A stretch of DNA of 63,032 nucleotides, filler included, from Olpidium bornovanus S191 (lineage: Eukaryota > Fungi > Olpidiomycota): the NCBI GenBank assembly GCA_017911155.1. It is 31 parts of 31 records of this genome, joined end to end, with 100 filler letters (N's around TTAATTAATTAA, not from the genome) between each part and the next. Parts side by side here need not be neighbours in the genome. Positions count along the whole stretch, not along the records: positions 40,878 to 44,355 come from JAEFCI010013206.1; positions 44,456 to 47,502 come from JAEFCI010009164.1; 29 more parts are not named here. One strand, 5' to 3'. The notes beneath the pieces were generated by a model. That model saw only the letters and a program-made list of their open reading frames with translations. It ran no database searches and had not been told where the DNA came from. The position numbers were made by a program, and so were the translations under genes. Within the stretch, counting starts at the first letter, position 1; the number at the start of each line of letters is the position of its first letter. Of this stretch, positions 8,691 to 47,502 are shown piece after piece.

Positions 8691-9585
8691 GAAGTTGTGG
8701 ACAAACTCGTAGGAATCCAGGTCGTCGATGCCGATCCGGCATTTCACCGAGACTTCCCCGCCGTCGCCCAAGCCGTCGGCTATGGCGGTGCACAATCTGG
8801 CGACCAATTCCGGGTCTTTCATTAAGACGGCGCCGAAAAACCCTCGCTTGGCGGCGGGGGAGAGACGGTGAAATTTTTTGCGGTGAGACCGTGATATAAA
8901 TGCGATCGCGACGCAAGGGGCAGCGGGGGGGGGGGGGTGGGAAGGGAAAAGCAGAGGTTACCTGCACTTTATCGCTCGGGCACCCGACGTTGAGGTTTAT
9001 CTCCCGCCAACCCATCTCGCGCGCCTTCTCCGCGGCCCGGCGCATCGTGGCTGGGTCGCAGCCGCCGAGCTGCAGCACGCAGTTGTCGCGCGCCGGCTGT
9101 TTCGCGAGGAGCACCTCCGCCGGGCCGTGCACGAACAAGTTCGCGTGGACCATGTCGGTGTAGAGCGTCGCGTTCGGAGAGCACAGCCTGCACAGGTGGC
9201 GGAATTGCTGGTCCGCGGTCAGCACCCCCCGGGATCCCTCGTGGCGGGCGGTGGGAAACGCGGGCGGCGGGGGAACGAACGCGGTGGTAGCAAAAACGCC
9301 ACTTTCTATTAAAAAAAAAAAGGAAAAAAAAAAATCACTCACGATGTCCGACACGTCTATCATTGGAGCCACCGAGAACATCGGGGGCTTGCCCGGTACG
9401 TTTCCTGGCGGCTCTTGGCGTCGGGGTGCCGACGGCGCGAACGTTCTCCGGGCCTCCGGCTTCAAGCCGGCCGGCGCGCACGCCGGTCTGGGCGGCCGGC
9501 GGTAAAGCCGGCCGAGGGGCCGCCGAAGCGGCGCTGCGGCCAGGCGGGCCAGGCACCGCTCCGCCGCGCGTTCGAGCGGCGGCAT
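8691..9585 (-). CDS. dusA: tRNA-dihydrouridine synthase, DusA (bacterial-type U20/20a) subfamily, 5' part
   Basis: Exons 9585-9343, 9207-8962 and 8846-8691, all phase 0: FSVAPMIDVSDI|QFRHLCRL...LYTDM...VLQLGGCDP...EINLNVGCPSDKVQ|RGFFGAVLMKDPELVA...VSVKCRIGIDDLDSYEF. Confidence 0.85.
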
Positions 9586-10745
9586 TGGACGGGCGGGCTT
9601 GGGGTCGCGGACGACGAACGGTATATGTCTTTTTTTTTATTTCCGGCTGAGCTCGGCCTTGCACCCCAGAATTGTGCTTCGCCCGCGGAGGTGTCCCGGG
9701 GAGAGAATGGTGGGAAACGCGGACCGCAGCGTCCTCCCCCCCCCCCCCCCCCCGCCCCTTCCCACGCGGCCCCGCGCGCCAAATTTTGGAAAATGTTATA
9801 ATTATTCATAACGGGCGGCGCAGTCGCAACGCACATATCCCGCCCGTAAATGCGTCCCCTCGCCAGGCGCTGGCCAACTTGCGCAAAACCTTCTGCGTTC
9901 AACCGCCGCCGCGTCGGCGGCACCTGGTTCTTCCTAATGCTCTCTTCTTTTCCGTGGCCTCCGGCTGGTTCCTCGTGTACGGCCCTGTGCCGCTCAAGTT
10001 GCCCCTGCGAACGGGTCCGGCTGGTCTCTCGGGTTCGTCTTCGGCACCTTTGTCCTCTGGTCGCGGAGCGGCGGAGAAACCGCTCCCTTGCTCAGGAAGC
10101 GTCGAAGGACTGAACAGCGGCCTGCTGCGCGTTTCCCTCCTTCCGGCCGGCAGCTGGCAGCGGCGCCGAGTGAATAAGCTGCACGTATCCGCTCGCCGGA
10201 AATAAAAAAAAAGCGGCGTTGTGTGATGAAACTCATCCAGAGAACGTGACCGCGTAGGCTGATGCCGGCACGCGCAGCAGTGTGCACGTTATCATGGATC
10301 CACCAGAACGATGAATGGATGGCAGTCGGCATTTCTTTTTTTTTTCTACTGGTTTTTTTTTCATCTAGCCACAACGTGATTTAAGTTCAATGCGATGATT
10401 TGCGACCGCTGAGAACTTCGACGCGAGATAGTTCCGCCGAGCTGCCGCTTTGCCCACGAGGCTCTCAGGGGTGACTGCACCGCCTAGCGACCCAAAACCT
10501 CGCTTAGGCGTGCGTCGTGCGTATTCAAAAACCGCCACGTCCAGAGTACCCCAGAATCGAGGCGTCCAGCTGGGCCTCGCTTCCGGCGCGCGGCGACCGG
10601 GAAAACTCCCCNNNNNNNNNNNNNNNNNNNNNNNNNNNNNNNNNNNNNNNNNNNNTTAATTAATTAANNNNNNNNNNNNNNNNNNNNNNNNNNNNNNNNN
10701 NNNNNNNNNNNAAAAAAAAACAAAAAAAAACAAAAAAAAAACCAG

Positions 10746-11181
10746 GTTTACGCGATCTTCCGACAAGGCATAGTAGAGTTCCCGCGGAGTCCCATCCTGC
10801 TCCTCTCGTTTCACCTTTATTCCACCTTCATGAGCGCCGCCGGGTGCGGCGAGGAGTACCCTCTCGAGGAAACCAAAGAGCTGAACCGCGGTTTCGACGT
10901 GAGTTCCGGGGAGGGGGAGGGATGGGGTTTGGGGGGGGGGGGATTGCGAGAGAGAAAGTGGCGCGCGCGCGCGCGCGGGGGTGTGTACATCCACCGCGTG
11001 ACAATAAATCAGCCCTCTTCGTAACAAAAAAAAAAAAAAACAAAACAAAAAAAAAAAAAAAAAAAACAACCGCCCAGGTCATGTTTTTCGCGTACGTGAT
11101 CGAACGCATGAACGCCACCCGGGCGCAGATGACCGAACTCGGACAGGACAAGATCTTGAGCGTGACGAAATTTGCCGGTAG
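10746..11181 (+). CDS. Two internal exons of a probable TmcB/TmcC-like (tiny macrocysts, TPR-like) large membrane protein
   Basis: Exon 10746-10898 VYAIFRQGIVEFPRSPILLLSFHLY...NRGFD spliced in phase 0 to exon 11078-~11181 VMFFAYVIERMNATRAQMTELGQDKILSVTKFA; resembles the 'FPxSxxL...FDxxFxxY...R..ELG' pattern of that family (recalled, not searched). Confidence 0.45.
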
Positions 11182-12346
11182 GTAAAGAAAAAAAAGTTGT
11201 CGGCGTCGCTTTTTCGCGCCCCATCTATCCCGTGCCTGGGACTTTGGAGCACCGTAAACTCGCGTCTTATAAGAATCATGCCCGGGGCGCGTTTTTTTTT
11301 TCCTTTTTTTTTCTTTCATTCATTTTTTTCATGATTCCCAGAATACACCCGTCTTGAAACTTCAGCAAGCGCCAATCACAATCGAGCCAGGAAATTTCTT
11401 ATGATGTGTACGTTCCGACAGCAAAGTTCACGAATGGCTTTCAGGCATGACGCCGACTGAAAGGAAAAAAAAACTTCTCAGTTTGGCACACCATCAGCAA
11501 AACCCCAGAGGACAAGGAAACACGTGGGTTCCAGCAGAGTCCTCTGCTGCGAAGACAAGTTGTGGAGCTCGTTCAGTAACCAGACGGTTGCAACCCAGTC
11601 TCATTGGCGCTTTCAGACATACAAGAGGCGGTTAATGAAGCCGAAAGGGTAAGCAGCAAAAAGTTGCAAACATTAACTGCGCGTTCGACTTTTTTTTTGG
11701 AAAAAAAAAGCCTCTGAAACGCCGTGCGTGCCTAGTCCTACCGCATGNNNNNNNNNNNNNNNNNNNNNNNNNNNNNNNNNNNNNNNNNNNNTTAATTAAT
11801 TAANNNNNNNNNNNNNNNNNNNNNNNNNNNNNNNNNNNNNNNNNNNNGGCTTCCCTCCAGTGCTGTGCGAAGCCATCGTCTGCACAAGATGATTGTCACT
11901 GCACTGCCACAGATCCGTCAGGGGAAGCTGGTTCCTTCGAGAAGACGAGCTGATGAGATGTCCCATGGGGCAGAGCTACTCCCGGCACAAGAGTTATAGT
12001 GGGAACGCAATGACCGGCCACAATCGTCAGCTGACTACCCAGCTGGCTTCCCCGACGGTCTCTCTCCGCACAGACGCAGCGTGGTGAGGACCTTGCGCAA
12101 ACATGTGTCGAACGGTGTCACGGGTTAAATAAAGCAGGTACAATGCAGTCTGGTTATCTGGCTGATGTCTTTCCGTATGAGCCTGCTGTACGACATCTGA
12201 GTCTCTGAAACACGTGAGGCCGGTTGACACCGAAGTCAGTCGGCCAGTGTCCACCCACCGGGGACAGCGGGGGAAAAGCCCTCCTGGTCAATTTGCATGC
12301 ACGGATATCAACCACGTCATCTCGATTGGCTTTTTTTCTACAAACG

Positions 12347-44347: not shown

Positions 44348-44499
44348 ACCCCGCCNNNNNNNNNNNNNNNNNNNNNNNNNNNNNNNNNNNNNNNNNNNNT
44401 TAATTAATTAANNNNNNNNNNNNNNNNNNNNNNNNNNNNNNNNNNNNNNNNNNNNGGACGAAGTCACGATTGGGCTCATAACCTGTTGCGCATCAAAAG

Positions 44500-44572
44500 T
44501 GGGCCGACCGAGGGTCGAACTCGGGACCTTCCCTATCCCGGAGGGACGCTCTACCAACTGAGCTATCTGCCC
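44500..44572 (-). tRNA. tRNA-like sequence (anticodon GGG) inside a TRIM LTR; probably an element promoter rather than a decoding tRNA
   Basis: GGGCAGA TA GCTC AGTTGGTA GAGC G TCCCT CCGGGAT AGGGA AGGTC CCGAG TTCGACC CTCGG TCGGCCC A, then CTTTTG; one acceptor mismatch (A5:G68). Confidence 0.75.
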
Positions 44573-44731
44573 TATTAACCAGGTGTCTGGCTCGCCCTGC
44601 AAAGCCATTCCAACACCCCTCCTCGAGCCAGGCACCTCAGGCACTGCTGTCAATGGGGGTCGGCCACCCGCGCAACCACAATCGGAGGGACAAAGTCACA
44701 ATTGGGCTCATAACCTGTTGCGCATCAAAAG

Positions 44732-44805
44732 TGGGCCGACTGAGGGTCAAACTCGGGACCTTCCCCTTCCCAGAGGGATACTCTAACCAACTGAGCTATT
44801 TGCCC
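44732..44805 (-). tRNA. tRNA-like pseudogene copy 2 in a TRIM LTR
   Basis: Same cloverleaf, loop CTGGGAA, T-loop mutated to TTTGACC. Confidence 0.6.
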
Positions 44806-44964
44806 TATTCACCAGGTGTCTGGCTTGCCCTGCAAAGCCATTCCAAACCCCCCCCTTGAGCCAATCGCCTCAGGCATTGCTGTCAATGGGGCTCTGCCAC
44901 CTGCGCGACCACAATCGGAAGGACGAAGTCACGATTGGGCTCATAACCTGTTGCACATCAAAAG

Positions 44965-45038
44965 TGGGCTAACTGAGGGTTGAACTCGGGACCTTCCCCC
45001 TCCCAGAGGGACGCTCCAACTAACTAAGCTATCTGCCG
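44965..45038 (-). tRNA. tRNA-like pseudogene copy 3 in a TRIM LTR
   Basis: Most degraded copy; loop CTGGGAG, T-loop TTCAACC, D-loop altered. Confidence 0.5.
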
Positions 45039-45663
45039 TATTCTCCAGGTGTCTAGCGCGCCCTGCGAAGCCATTCCAACAATATACACCGCCGAGCAAC
45101 TGGCGTTGTACAAGAAGGAAGCAACCCGGTGAGCAATGGTTTCACTGGAAAGCGGACCTGCGTTCTCGACCTCACAGCGACACGCATGCCGCCCGCCGCC
45201 GCAAGCTAATCGTGTCCTACAGCCCTCACCTTGCGAACTTCTTTCGGAGAAATTCGCTGTTGGTGTGCCGGTCCGAAGTCAAACGGCCCACGCGGCGAGA
45301 GGAAAGTCAGAAAGGGGCGTAGTGTCCCAGAACGCTCGCTCCGGCTTTCTCGGTGTCCGACAGCTGCACGGGCGCGAGCACCGCTTCTTTCCCTCTCCGC
45401 TTTTTTTTATTTTTTTTTTTTTCTAAAGGTCCGCGGCGGCGCAGGCTGGCCCGGGAAGGTCGGTCGGTTTCGGGACTCCGGGCGAGGGCGGCGGAACGGG
45501 GGAAGGTAAGGGGGAGGGAAGGGGAACAACGGGGCGGAGCTCTCCCTCCCTGGCCGGGGCGTGACTACTCAGACGCGTTTTTTTTTTTTCGCACTCGTCG
45601 TCAGGGGGAGAACACCTCGCGCGCGCGCGTCCTCCGCCTATTTCGCCGTCGGGAAGACCCCAG

Positions 45664-47502
45664 ATGGGCTCCTACTGTTCCGGCTTCTGCCTGCCAACCG
45701 CGGGAAGTGCGACGCCTGCCGACCTGGAAGCGGCTACCGCCACCGCTGCCGCGGCCGCGATGAGCAACCGGGGAAAGTCCCCGAAGTCGCCGGGGCCGAA
45801 GCCGACGTTCGCCGGAGACGCCGGGGGCTCCGGGGCGTCTCTCGGCAAGCGCCTCCTCGGTCCGAACGGCGTCGGTCTTGTCCACGGGGGCGGCGGCGGC
45901 GGCGGCGGCAGGGAAGGCACGGTCAAGAAGGCGCCGTTCCCCGACGCCCCGGTCATGGAGATCGGCCGCCCGACGAACGTCGAGCACGGAGTTCACGTAG
46001 AGTTCAATACCGAGAGCGGCAGGTTCCGGGTAAGCGGCTCCCGCGTGAACGAAAACGGGGGGAGAAGTTTCTTTTCCGTGTTAAACTGGCAGGCCAACGG
46101 CGCACGGAACGCGTTCGTCCCCTGACCGCTTCCTGTGGTGCATCGCTGCCGCAGGGCCTGCCCGACGTCTGGCACAAGGAGCTACCCCACGACGATCTAC
46201 TTAATACGAAGTACATTAATCCCAACCTTGTCCCGACTCCGTCTACGTCCGCGTACTACGACACGTCTGCAGCGTCCGGGGGCGCTCGGCAGCGGTTCTC
46301 GTTGGCGGGGGCCCCGCCTAAGAGGGGGTCTTCGATTACGTCGTCGATGTTGGCGGCCCGCAACGTGTCGAGCCCCTACGGCTTCAAACACAACCTACAT
46401 CTCGCGCCCGAAAATTTCACTGACCCGGATCAGTTTGCCGAGCTGTCACCGGCATGGAAAGCGGCGCTGAGATCGGTCGGGATCACCGAGTCCGAAGCGA
46501 CGATGAACCCCTCTGCTGTCGCCGGCCTGATGAAACTGCGCATTCAGCCGTCGCGATCCGTGGCGGGAGCGAAAAAGCCCGTCGGCCGCGTCGGCTCAAA
46601 CGTCTCGGCCGAGGCCGCCCCCTCCCGGGCCGGAGGCCGGAATCCGCAGGAGTTGCGGGTTCCGAGCCGGCCGGCGCCGCCCCCTCCTGTCGGCCGATCA
46701 CCCGGAACGCCGCCGTCCGTCACCAGCAGCGGATCTTTCTGCAGCTCGGCAACACGCTCGGAGCAGGGCACAGCCGTCGAGAATTTGCCGGCCAACCACG
46801 CGCTGTCTTCGACCGCGGTGCCGCTGGTGTTCAGCGGCAGCTCGTTGACTCTGCACGCCGAGCTGCCGTCGTTGCCGATAACAGCCGCCTCGGGCTTATC
46901 CCTGGCAGAGCGGCGCTCCGTCAGATTGTCGATTCCCCACGGCCGCGACTTCGTGTCGAAAAGACCTCCGGACGCTCTGCTGAAGAACGCCGCGCCGGTA
47001 GACGACGCCGACTCCCTCTCTGACAGCATGGCCAACACAGATTTGGAGGACGTCTACAACATGTACACGGACTCGTGCGCCGTGTCCCCGGAAGAGTTTG
47101 TCCCGTTCCCGGCCAGCCAGACCCTGCTGGAGCCGTTGGACAGACAGCGGGCGCCAGCTGCTACGCCGCAAGCGACCGGGGCACCGGACAGCGCCGAACC
47201 CGGAGAGGAAGCCGAGATGCTGTGTGCTCTCCAGGCAGCGGGGCTGCCGCAAGGGCACGAAACGGAGAGCGCGGACGGCGAAGGTGAGGAACACGACGAG
47301 GGTTATTCGCAGCCGGAGGACCTCACGCCGCTTCTCAGCAAGGGTGACCCGAAGGACATTTTCTGCAACACGGTCCAGGTCGCGGAGGGCGAATCCGGGC
47401 AACTCTTCGTGGCCCGCATCCAGGACCCCGCGGTCGACTTCCGCTATCGGCGATGGCTGGAAACGTGCAATCCGAAGCAGAAGGACGGAGACGCAGGCAT
47501 GA
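45664..47502 (+). CDS. PAK/STE20-family kinase with two CRIB-like motifs, 5' part
   Basis: Exon 45664-46029 (122 codons) EIGRPTNVEHGVHVEFNTESGRFR| joined at 46155 to GLPDVW; second motif VSSPYGFKHNLHL...AWKAALRSVGITESEA; kinase start GDPKDIF...VAEGESGQLFVA. Confidence 0.8.

Follow-up and report, generated by a model that had tools for sequence, protein, structure and literature searches.

A probable Helenus-type miniature retrotransposon family with tRNA-like modules in its long terminal repeats in the zoosporic fungus Olpidium bornovanus

Cassandra is reportedly a plant terminal-repeat retrotransposon in miniature (TRIM) with a 5S rRNA-derived promoter for RNA polymerase III (Pol III) in its long terminal repeats (LTRs), as Kalendar et al. 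are said to have described in 2008, and long tandem arrays of it were reportedly described by Kalendar et al. in 2020. The repeat studied here lies at positions 44456-45081 of a 63,032-nucleotide stretch of DNA from Olpidium bornovanus S191 (filler included; hereafter the window), and it very probably consists of copies of a non-autonomous, non-coding TRIM of the kind known as Helenus or "TRIMp3", in which the LTRs carry a tRNA-like module. Helenus elements are TRIMs of 311-1263 bp with a tRNA-derived sequence in the LTRs, a PBS (primer-binding site) and a PPT (polypurine tract), and their target-site duplications (TSDs) measure 5 bp in fungi and plants and 4 bp in animals (Kojima 2024, Biology 13:119, PMC10886601). 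The dominant PBS of fungal Helenus has been assigned to the anticodon arm of initiator tRNA-Met, a PBS type common to Ty5, copia and some Copia-superfamily elements, and because this PBS is shared, Kojima proposed Copia elements as the mobilisers of Helenus (PMC10886601). Transcription by Pol III was proposed by the same author, without demonstration for any Helenus; the published fungal hosts all belong to the Basidiomycota, namely Pucciniales and three Agaricomycetes, and tandem arrays were noted for Helenus LTR-11_DR and for Cassandra (PMC10886601).

Anatomy and dispersal of the repeat

The repeat occupies the start of the piece under study, which spans 44456-47502 of the window (3047 bp, 63% G+C, JAEFCI010009164.1 of assembly GCA_017911155.1). 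Tandem Repeats Finder reports a tandem repeat at 44456-45079 with a period of 233 bp and 2.7 copies that show 88% matches and are free of indels. Each unit, taken on the minus strand, runs from an LTR of 132-133 bp (TGTTGG...GCAACA) through the PBS and a spacer to a purine tract. The sequence GGTTATGAGCCCAATCG abuts the GCAACA end of each window LTR with a gap of 0 nt and is followed by a spacer of about 70 nt, and a purine run, AAGGGGGGG or GAGGAGGGG, stands immediately 5' of the next LTR. The internal region of the window units totals 100 bp, and a single element, comprising an LTR of 132-133 bp, the internal region and a second LTR, measures 365 bp. Within each LTR, an upstream part of about 44 nt is followed by the tRNA-like module (73-74 nt, starting at position 45), by TTTT and by 11 nt ending in CA.

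Three LTRs are present, all on the minus strand. The outermost and 5'-most, LTR 1 (44949-45081, 133 bp, TGTTGG...GCAACA), is the most decayed of them; its tRNA-like module (44964-45038 by ARAGORN, Rfam tRNA score 36.8 bits) has an A-box decayed to TAGCTTAGTTAG and a B-box decayed to GTTCAACC. The border 45081/45082 is the exact start of this LTR, with unique DNA beyond it and no purine tract preceding it, and a candidate half of a TSD, TATAT on the minus strand, can be read in the sequence at 45082-45086, the position of its partner lying beyond the contig end. Internal region 1 (44849-44948, 100 bp) holds the PBS core GGTTATGAGCCC at 44937-44948 and the purine tract AAGGGGGGG at 44849-44857. 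LTR 2, in the middle (44716-44848, 133 bp), has its 5' end mutated to GTTTGG and carries a module at 44731-44805 (ARAGORN; Rfam tRNA 46.6 bits) with C56 of the B-box changed to T, and internal region 2 (44616-44715, 100 bp) holds the PBS core at 44704-44715 and the purine tract GAGGAGGGG at 44616-44624. LTR 3 (44484-44615, 132 bp) is the best preserved. Its module (44499-44572 by ARAGORN; Rfam tRNA 58.1 bits) retains an intact A-box TAGCTCAGTTGG and B-box GTTCGACC, an anticodon loop CCGGGAU (C33, GGG) and a single acceptor-stem mismatch, and TTTT follows at 44495-44498. The third internal region is represented by its start only (44456-44483, the PBS and 16 nt), being cut 28 nt in by the end of the piece, and the array may extend past that end.

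These data agree closely with a sequence-only reading of the window, which had described a minus-strand series of LTR, PBS, spacer and PPT with a period of 232-233 bp, an outermost LTR that lacks a PPT and abuts unique DNA, and in each LTR a 73-74-nt tRNA-like module, its A- and B-boxes intact in the best copy, followed by TTTT. The serial order and the period are recovered by Tandem Repeats Finder and by direct reading, the border falls exactly at 45081/45082, and ARAGORN, Rfam and the sequence itself agree on the module. Small adjustments apply to that reading: the spacer from PBS core to purine tract measures about 79 nt rather than about 85 bp, and the end of the piece falls 28 nt inside a third internal region rather than at the PBS.

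The family is dispersed. Two more contigs of GCA_017911155.1, L001 and L002, came to light in a phmmer search whose query was a spurious plus-strand open reading frame (ORF) over the repeat, whereas a protein-database search with a minus-strand reading frame over the element returned no match. Each of the two contigs holds one full LTR-internal-LTR copy (L001 317-681 and L002 1662-2020), which BLASTN aligns with the window element over 363-364 nt at 89-91% identity; the copies measure 359-365 bp, with a first LTR of 128-133 bp, an internal region of 100 bp and a second LTR of 131-133 bp. The L001 copy is flanked as ...TTTCGACC| element |CGACCTTC..., with the perfect 5-bp TSD CGACC, and the L002 copy as ...GCCTGAC| element |CTGACCTA..., with the perfect 5-bp TSD CTGAC. 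Both duplications are located exactly at the TGTTGG and GCAACA ends; two perfect 5/5 matches would arise by chance with a probability of about 1e-6. In every copy the PBS GGTTATGAGCCC follows ...GCAACA without a gap, and each of the four complete internal regions has a purine tract directly against the following LTR, namely AAGGGGGGG, GAGGAGGGG, GAGGGGGGG and AAAGGGGGG. TSD-flanked dispersed copies, which the interpretation as an LTR element had called for, are thus present, and an occurrence of the unit purely as a satellite does not hold.

Contigs of independent public sequencing runs (X1 and X10), aligned to the piece at >=82% identity, place the ends of the repeat at the same borders. In run X1 up to 13 different contigs cover one repeat position; four of the X1 contigs stop matching at 44484/44485, the 3' end of the LTR, and continue into mutually different unrelated sequence, and two stop at 44615, the 5' end of the LTR, and continue into different unrelated flanks. 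At 44846, about 2 nt before the mutated 5' end of LTR 2 (44848) is reached, one X10 contig departs from the repeat into an unrelated flank. The junction between the outer LTR and the unique flank is recovered in contigs of both runs too. The family is therefore dispersed with the predicted ends, as shown by the TSD-flanked copies and the exact break-offs of contigs, and it is multi-copy and interspersed, being carried by three contigs of the assembly. No ORF over the element has a Pfam match, pointing to an element devoid of coding capacity.

Pattern scans elsewhere were negative: no copy was found in contigs of the JGI metagenome collections with two exact patterns (one for the LTR 3' end, one CpG-tolerant and fitting all seven LTRs) or by pattern scan in viral contigs, collections that need not contain the organism, so that these negatives do not count against dispersal. 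A fifth match of the representative search was rejected, since it had arisen through a spurious repetitive ORF in an unrelated ENA metagenome contig (L004); at 9000-18500 it has a satellite with a 71-bp unit, about 134 copies and 95% matches, over which ORFs of 343 amino acids are called.

Comparison with the published consensus sequences completes the assignment. In the consensus file of Kojima 2024, 48 internal portions (opening ggttatgagccc) begin with the same 12 nt as the PBS core GGTTATGAGCCC, and these 48 published internal portions end in G-rich purine runs, like the Olpidium element. All structural hallmarks of Helenus/TRIMp3 are found in the Olpidium repeat, namely LTRs, a non-coding internal region, a tRNA-derived block, a PBS, a PPT, 5-bp TSDs and multiple copies. 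The presence of LTRs, PBS, PPT and fixed 5-bp duplications sets it apart from SINE2 elements (short interspersed nuclear elements, SINEs), and the LTR module derived from 5S rRNA that marks Cassandra is absent.

The tRNA-like module, priming and transcription

ARAGORN predicts three tRNA-like genes in the array, one per unit and all on the minus strand, each typed as tRNA-Pro(GGG). The Rfam model RF00005 scores above its gathering score of 29 in all seven LTRs of the window, L001 and L002 (32.7-58.1 bits), and TTTT directly 3' of the module is invariant in the same seven. When the piece was scanned with Rfam at E<=1, tRNA was the only family returned and 5S_rRNA was not found. The A- and B-boxes are intact in the least-decayed copies.

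We propose the following cycle for the element. The minus strand would be primed at GGTTATGAGCCC by a fragment of initiator tRNA-Met that ends in the anticodon stem, a "half-tRNA" of the Ty5/copia type, and the plus strand would be primed by the purine tract at the end of the internal region, with reverse transcriptase and integrase presumably supplied in trans by a Copia-superfamily element that uses the same primer. The genomic RNA may start at the tRNA-like module of the 5' LTR (position 45) by means of an internal Pol III promoter composed of the A-box TAGCTCAGTTGG and the B-box GTTCGACC, read through the weak T4 of the 5' LTR and end at the T4 of the 3' LTR, giving a transcript of about 310 nt. 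On such a Pol III model, the R region would be formed by the tRNA-like block, leaving a U5 of only about 11 nt. That the polymerase passes the first TTTT is plausible, since a run of four Ts is a weak Pol III terminator in yeasts.

Expression data come from run X1, which includes RNA: in its contig of the gene next to the array, splice joints with GT..AG ends occur at 46028>46154 and 45503>45603. The family contigs of this run have depths of 20-78 each, whereas the mRNA of that gene reaches 41.5 and the intergenic flank 2-11, and the contig depth summed over parts of the repeat reaches 137-699. We rejected the summed depth as an estimate of copy number or expression, RNA and DNA contributions being inseparable in it, and the Logan contigs themselves carry neither strand nor transcript starts and ends. 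The raw reads of a size-fractionated small-RNA run, X16, gave 0 reads on the whole piece and no reads of the organism, and hence no test of expression.

Several points weigh against the reading of the repeat as a Pol III-driven Helenus array. The two LTRs of one element are 89.4% identical in L001 and 91.3% in L002, and because LTR pairs are only 89-91% identical, these copies are probably inactive. The canonical B-box is kept in 2 of the 7 LTRs, C56 having changed to T in four and G57 to A in one, and the T4 right after the module would halt a Pol III transcript in the 5' LTR barring read-through. Coverage of the intergenic flank at 2-11 means that DNA carry-over from a multi-copy family may explain the X1 depth, and the Pol III drive of the Olpidium element is, as for all Helenus, a hypothesis. 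The complementarity of the PBS to the anticodon arm of initiator tRNA-Met is likewise presumed from the published assignment and general knowledge rather than from a host tRNA, and no helper element turned up in this analysis. Furthermore, the order LTR-internal-LTR-internal-LTR(-internal...) is known from one MEGAHIT contig, which ends inside the repeat.

In one alternative, the element is an ordinary TRIM driven by RNA polymerase II (Pol II) and the tRNA-like block is a passenger, e.g., an old tRNA or SINE insertion in the LTR, that plays no role in transcription. We regard this as possible but doubtful. In its favour, the T4 directly 3' of the module would stop a Pol III transcript at about 78 nt, although T4 is a weak terminator in yeasts. 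Summed depth in X1 also peaks (699, bin 44558-44659) over the initial stretch of the LTR together with the purine tract and internal region, as against 186 over the tRNA-like part. In addition, some X1 contigs seem to keep the LTR ends and to skip or replace the tRNA-like block, with joints at 44498>44580 and 44498>44583. These joints occur in two contigs, with only 24 nt anchored on one side and with intervening letters possible, and the contigs may represent a sister LTR that has no tRNA module or a different one. On the other hand, the module occupies the same place in the LTR as in the published Helenus of rusts, Selaginella, oysters and wasps, and this shared position, near the 3' end and followed by a T run and a short CA tail, argues for a selected layout. 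The intactness of both boxes in the least-decayed copies also speaks against a passenger, as does the 5S-bearing analogue Cassandra, whose Pol III promoter reportedly drives its transcription (PMC10886601).

Decay of the copies, the tandem order and the flanking gene

The three window LTRs are 85-91% identical among themselves. Distances to other copies are 0.14-0.21 for LTR 1, 0.10-0.15 for LTR 2 and 0.05-0.10 for LTR 3, and LTR 3 is 95.5% identical to the 5' LTR of L001, closer than the paired LTRs within either complete element. Such a star-like pattern is what an old burst, with each copy decaying independently afterwards, would leave. The 28 CpG positions, which make up 12% of the 233 positions of the unit, hold 28 of the 86 differences from the majority letter (33%), and 25 of these 28 are C>T or G>A changes. 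The excess at CpG is about 3.5-fold per site, its polarity being judged from only seven copies (seven LTRs and four internal regions), and suggests that repeats in Olpidium bornovanus are cytosine-methylated.

The unequal decay bears directly on the tandem order. The genome is that of Chang et al. 2021, a MEGAHIT assembly of 2x100 Illumina reads from zoospores washed from cucumber roots. The family could be real while its tandem order is chimeric, i.e., a de Bruijn path through dispersed copies whose sequences coincide in stretches around the LTR/PBS junction, an explanation that we consider unlikely, if not strongly so. MEGAHIT was run on 2x100 reads and no pair-based scaffolding is described; the contig ends 28 nt past LTR 3 in sequence identical to the start of internal region 1, a typical break of a repeat graph; and the unequal decay of the three LTRs is easier to explain by copies of different age. 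Recurrent CpG changes can also create identical stretches of at least 40 nt, e.g., the last 40 nt of LTR 2, which equal those of the 5' LTR of L002, and no contig from another run has been shown to span two internal regions. However, the units differ at 9-15% of positions, so that shared k-mers long enough for the larger MEGAHIT k are unlikely, and divergence of this extent argues against an artefact of collapse or expansion. Recombination of complementary DNA (cDNA) into a resident copy would, moreover, also set younger units beside older ones, and arrays of this type are documented for Helenus LTR-11_DR and Cassandra (PMC10886601). If the array is real, it may have arisen by unequal recombination between LTRs or by cDNA recombining into a resident copy, and the latter route would match the observed decay.

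Two further explanations fare far worse. The array might be a tandem cluster of functional tRNA-Pro(GGG) genes, as the three ARAGORN calls and the Rfam scores above threshold would allow. We find this scarcely credible. The best copy has C33, where U33 is near-universal, and an A5·G68 mismatch in the acceptor stem, other copies have more mismatches, with scores dropping as low as 33-37 bits, and the U33 of some copies can be attributed to a C-to-T change at the CpG formed by C33 and G34. To our knowledge, eukaryotes do not normally use a tRNA-Pro with a GGG anticodon. Minimum free energy folding of the three tRNA-like blocks as single sequences gave no cloverleaf and no greater stability than in shuffles (z-scores of -1.15 to +0.38), which leaves the covariance model and the box motifs as the sole basis of the likeness to tRNA; and the modules sit within LTRs, as parts of an element that has transposed. 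In our reading the module is what is left of a promoter rather than a working tRNA. Equally implausible is a tRNA-derived SINE, or a satellite with a tRNA-derived head, which would account for a tRNA-like head with A- and B-boxes and for the tandem arrangement at the contig end, but the tRNA-like +1 lies 44 nt downstream of the start of the repeat, the single copies at other loci have a direct repeat at either end with a PBS and a purine tract between them, exact and fixed 5-bp duplications stand at the TG...CA ends, and an A-rich or simple-repeat tail is absent.

Outside the element, the remainder of the piece contains a host gene on the plus strand, the N-terminal part of a PAK/Ste20-like kinase with a CRIB/PBD domain (45664-47502, start codon at 45664). 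Its product is 100% identical to the NCBI protein BJ554DRAFT_1887 of Olpidium bornovanus, a match that identifies the host. The PBD is matched by Pfam PF00786 with an E value of 3e-17, and the kinase domain starts at the end of the piece. The gene region extends over 45477-47502 (+), with an intron in the 5' untranslated region (45504-45602) and a coding intron (46029-46153), as seen in a spliced X1 contig of 2772 nt. Some 400 bp separate the first mapped base of the kinase mRNA from the TRIM array, which is upstream of it and in divergent orientation. In the flank between them, the 130 bp at 45096-45225 are present in the assembly and skipped by X1 and X10 contigs; the segment has no GT..AG ends on either strand and shows a 3-bp microhomology, and it looks like an insertion/deletion difference between isolates. 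In the soil metagenome run X12, two contigs of 151 nt match the kinase gene at 46627-46777 and 46947-47097 with 0 differences, indicating that this Olpidium or a very close relative was in that soil sample.

Gene models are annotated antisense to the TRIM copies, namely BJ554DRAFT_1885 (window 44653-44983, +), BJ554DRAFT_404 (L002 1657-2078) and one call at L001 118-627. None of the three has a Pfam match, and they look like annotation artefacts. Copies of the element thus inflate tRNA predictions (tRNA-Pro-GGG by ARAGORN) and carry "hypothetical proteins" in the public record, and masking them is worthwhile.

Comparison with known systems

The sequence-only reading had pointed to a tRNA-bearing TRIM group named Helenus, correctly (Kojima 2024, PMC10886601), and had suggested that the family, its tandem form and its host might be undescribed. 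The family and the host are indeed missing from the lists of Kojima 2024, and the strings "Olpidi" and "Chytrid" are absent from PMC10886601; tandem arrays, in contrast, had already been noted there for LTR-11_DR and Cassandra. A search of one literature library found no paper linking Olpidium with retrotransposon biology. The Olpidium repeat is a new family, in a new host phylum, of a known kind of element, Helenus/TRIMp3.

Compared with Helenus, and especially with LTR-1_PGr and Helenus-2_PGr of Pucciniales, the Olpidium element shares short TG...CA LTRs in which a tRNA-like block with A- and B-boxes stands close to the 3' end and is followed by a T run and a short tail, together with the PBS GGTTATGAGCCC, a G-rich purine tract at the end of the internal region, a 5-bp TSD and the lack of coding capacity; in both, the tRNA-like part is probably non-functional as a tRNA. 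Its dimensions (LTR 132-133, internal region 100, full length 365, TSD 5) place it at the small end of the Helenus size table, beside Hemileia (116/79/311) and Selaginella (120/85/325). A comparison of the LTR with a few published Helenus consensus sequences, from Puccinia, Selaginella, an oyster and a wasp, found no similarity other than generic tRNA motifs and the TGTTG end. The hosts differ: Olpidium bornovanus belongs to the Olpidiomycota and is a root-parasitic, zoosporic, early-diverging fungus, whereas the published fungal hosts are Basidiomycota. Small-RNA-promoter TRIMs are thereby extended from Basidiomycota to Olpidiomycota, the zoosporic lineage closest to terrestrial fungi, and the presence of the same initiator-tRNA anticodon-arm primer in both groups bears on whether such elements originated repeatedly or are old.

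We venture as an improbable conjecture that either the Olpidium family, which has the same anticodon-arm PBS for initiator tRNA-Met, the same 5-bp duplication and the same LTR layout as basidiomycete Helenus, shares ancestry with it instead of having originated independently, or the X1 contigs that lack the tRNA-like block represent a surviving tRNA-less sister family. In the former case, TRIMs with tRNA promoters and Copia helpers primed by half-tRNAs would form a partnership that predates the split of zoosporic and terrestrial fungi. In the latter, this genome would preserve a record of how a Pol III-driven TRIM came into being, through a tRNA or SINE that inserted into an LTR.

Outside fungi, Helenus-1_SMo of Selaginella moellendorffii has a like layout (LTR 120, internal region 85, full length 325, TSD 5), its LTR running from TGTTAG... 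through about 33 nt, GGGCAGGTAGCTCAGTGGTAGAGC... and a T4 run to ...CCAACA; it differs in its plant host and in a classical PBS complementary to a tRNA 3' end, TGGTATCGGAGC, whereas the Olpidium PBS is of the anticodon-arm type. Cassandra follows the same principle, a small-RNA gene module with promoter and terminator in each LTR of a TRIM, and it too forms LTR-internal-LTR-internal-LTR arrays, but its module is derived from 5S, its hosts are plants only, it is larger (565-860 bp) and its transcription by Pol III has been shown experimentally. Ty5 of Saccharomyces and copia of Drosophila share with the Olpidium element a PBS for the anticodon stem-loop of initiator tRNA-Met, a 5-bp TSD and LTR ends of the TGTTG...CAACA type, yet they are autonomous elements of several kb that are transcribed by Pol II.

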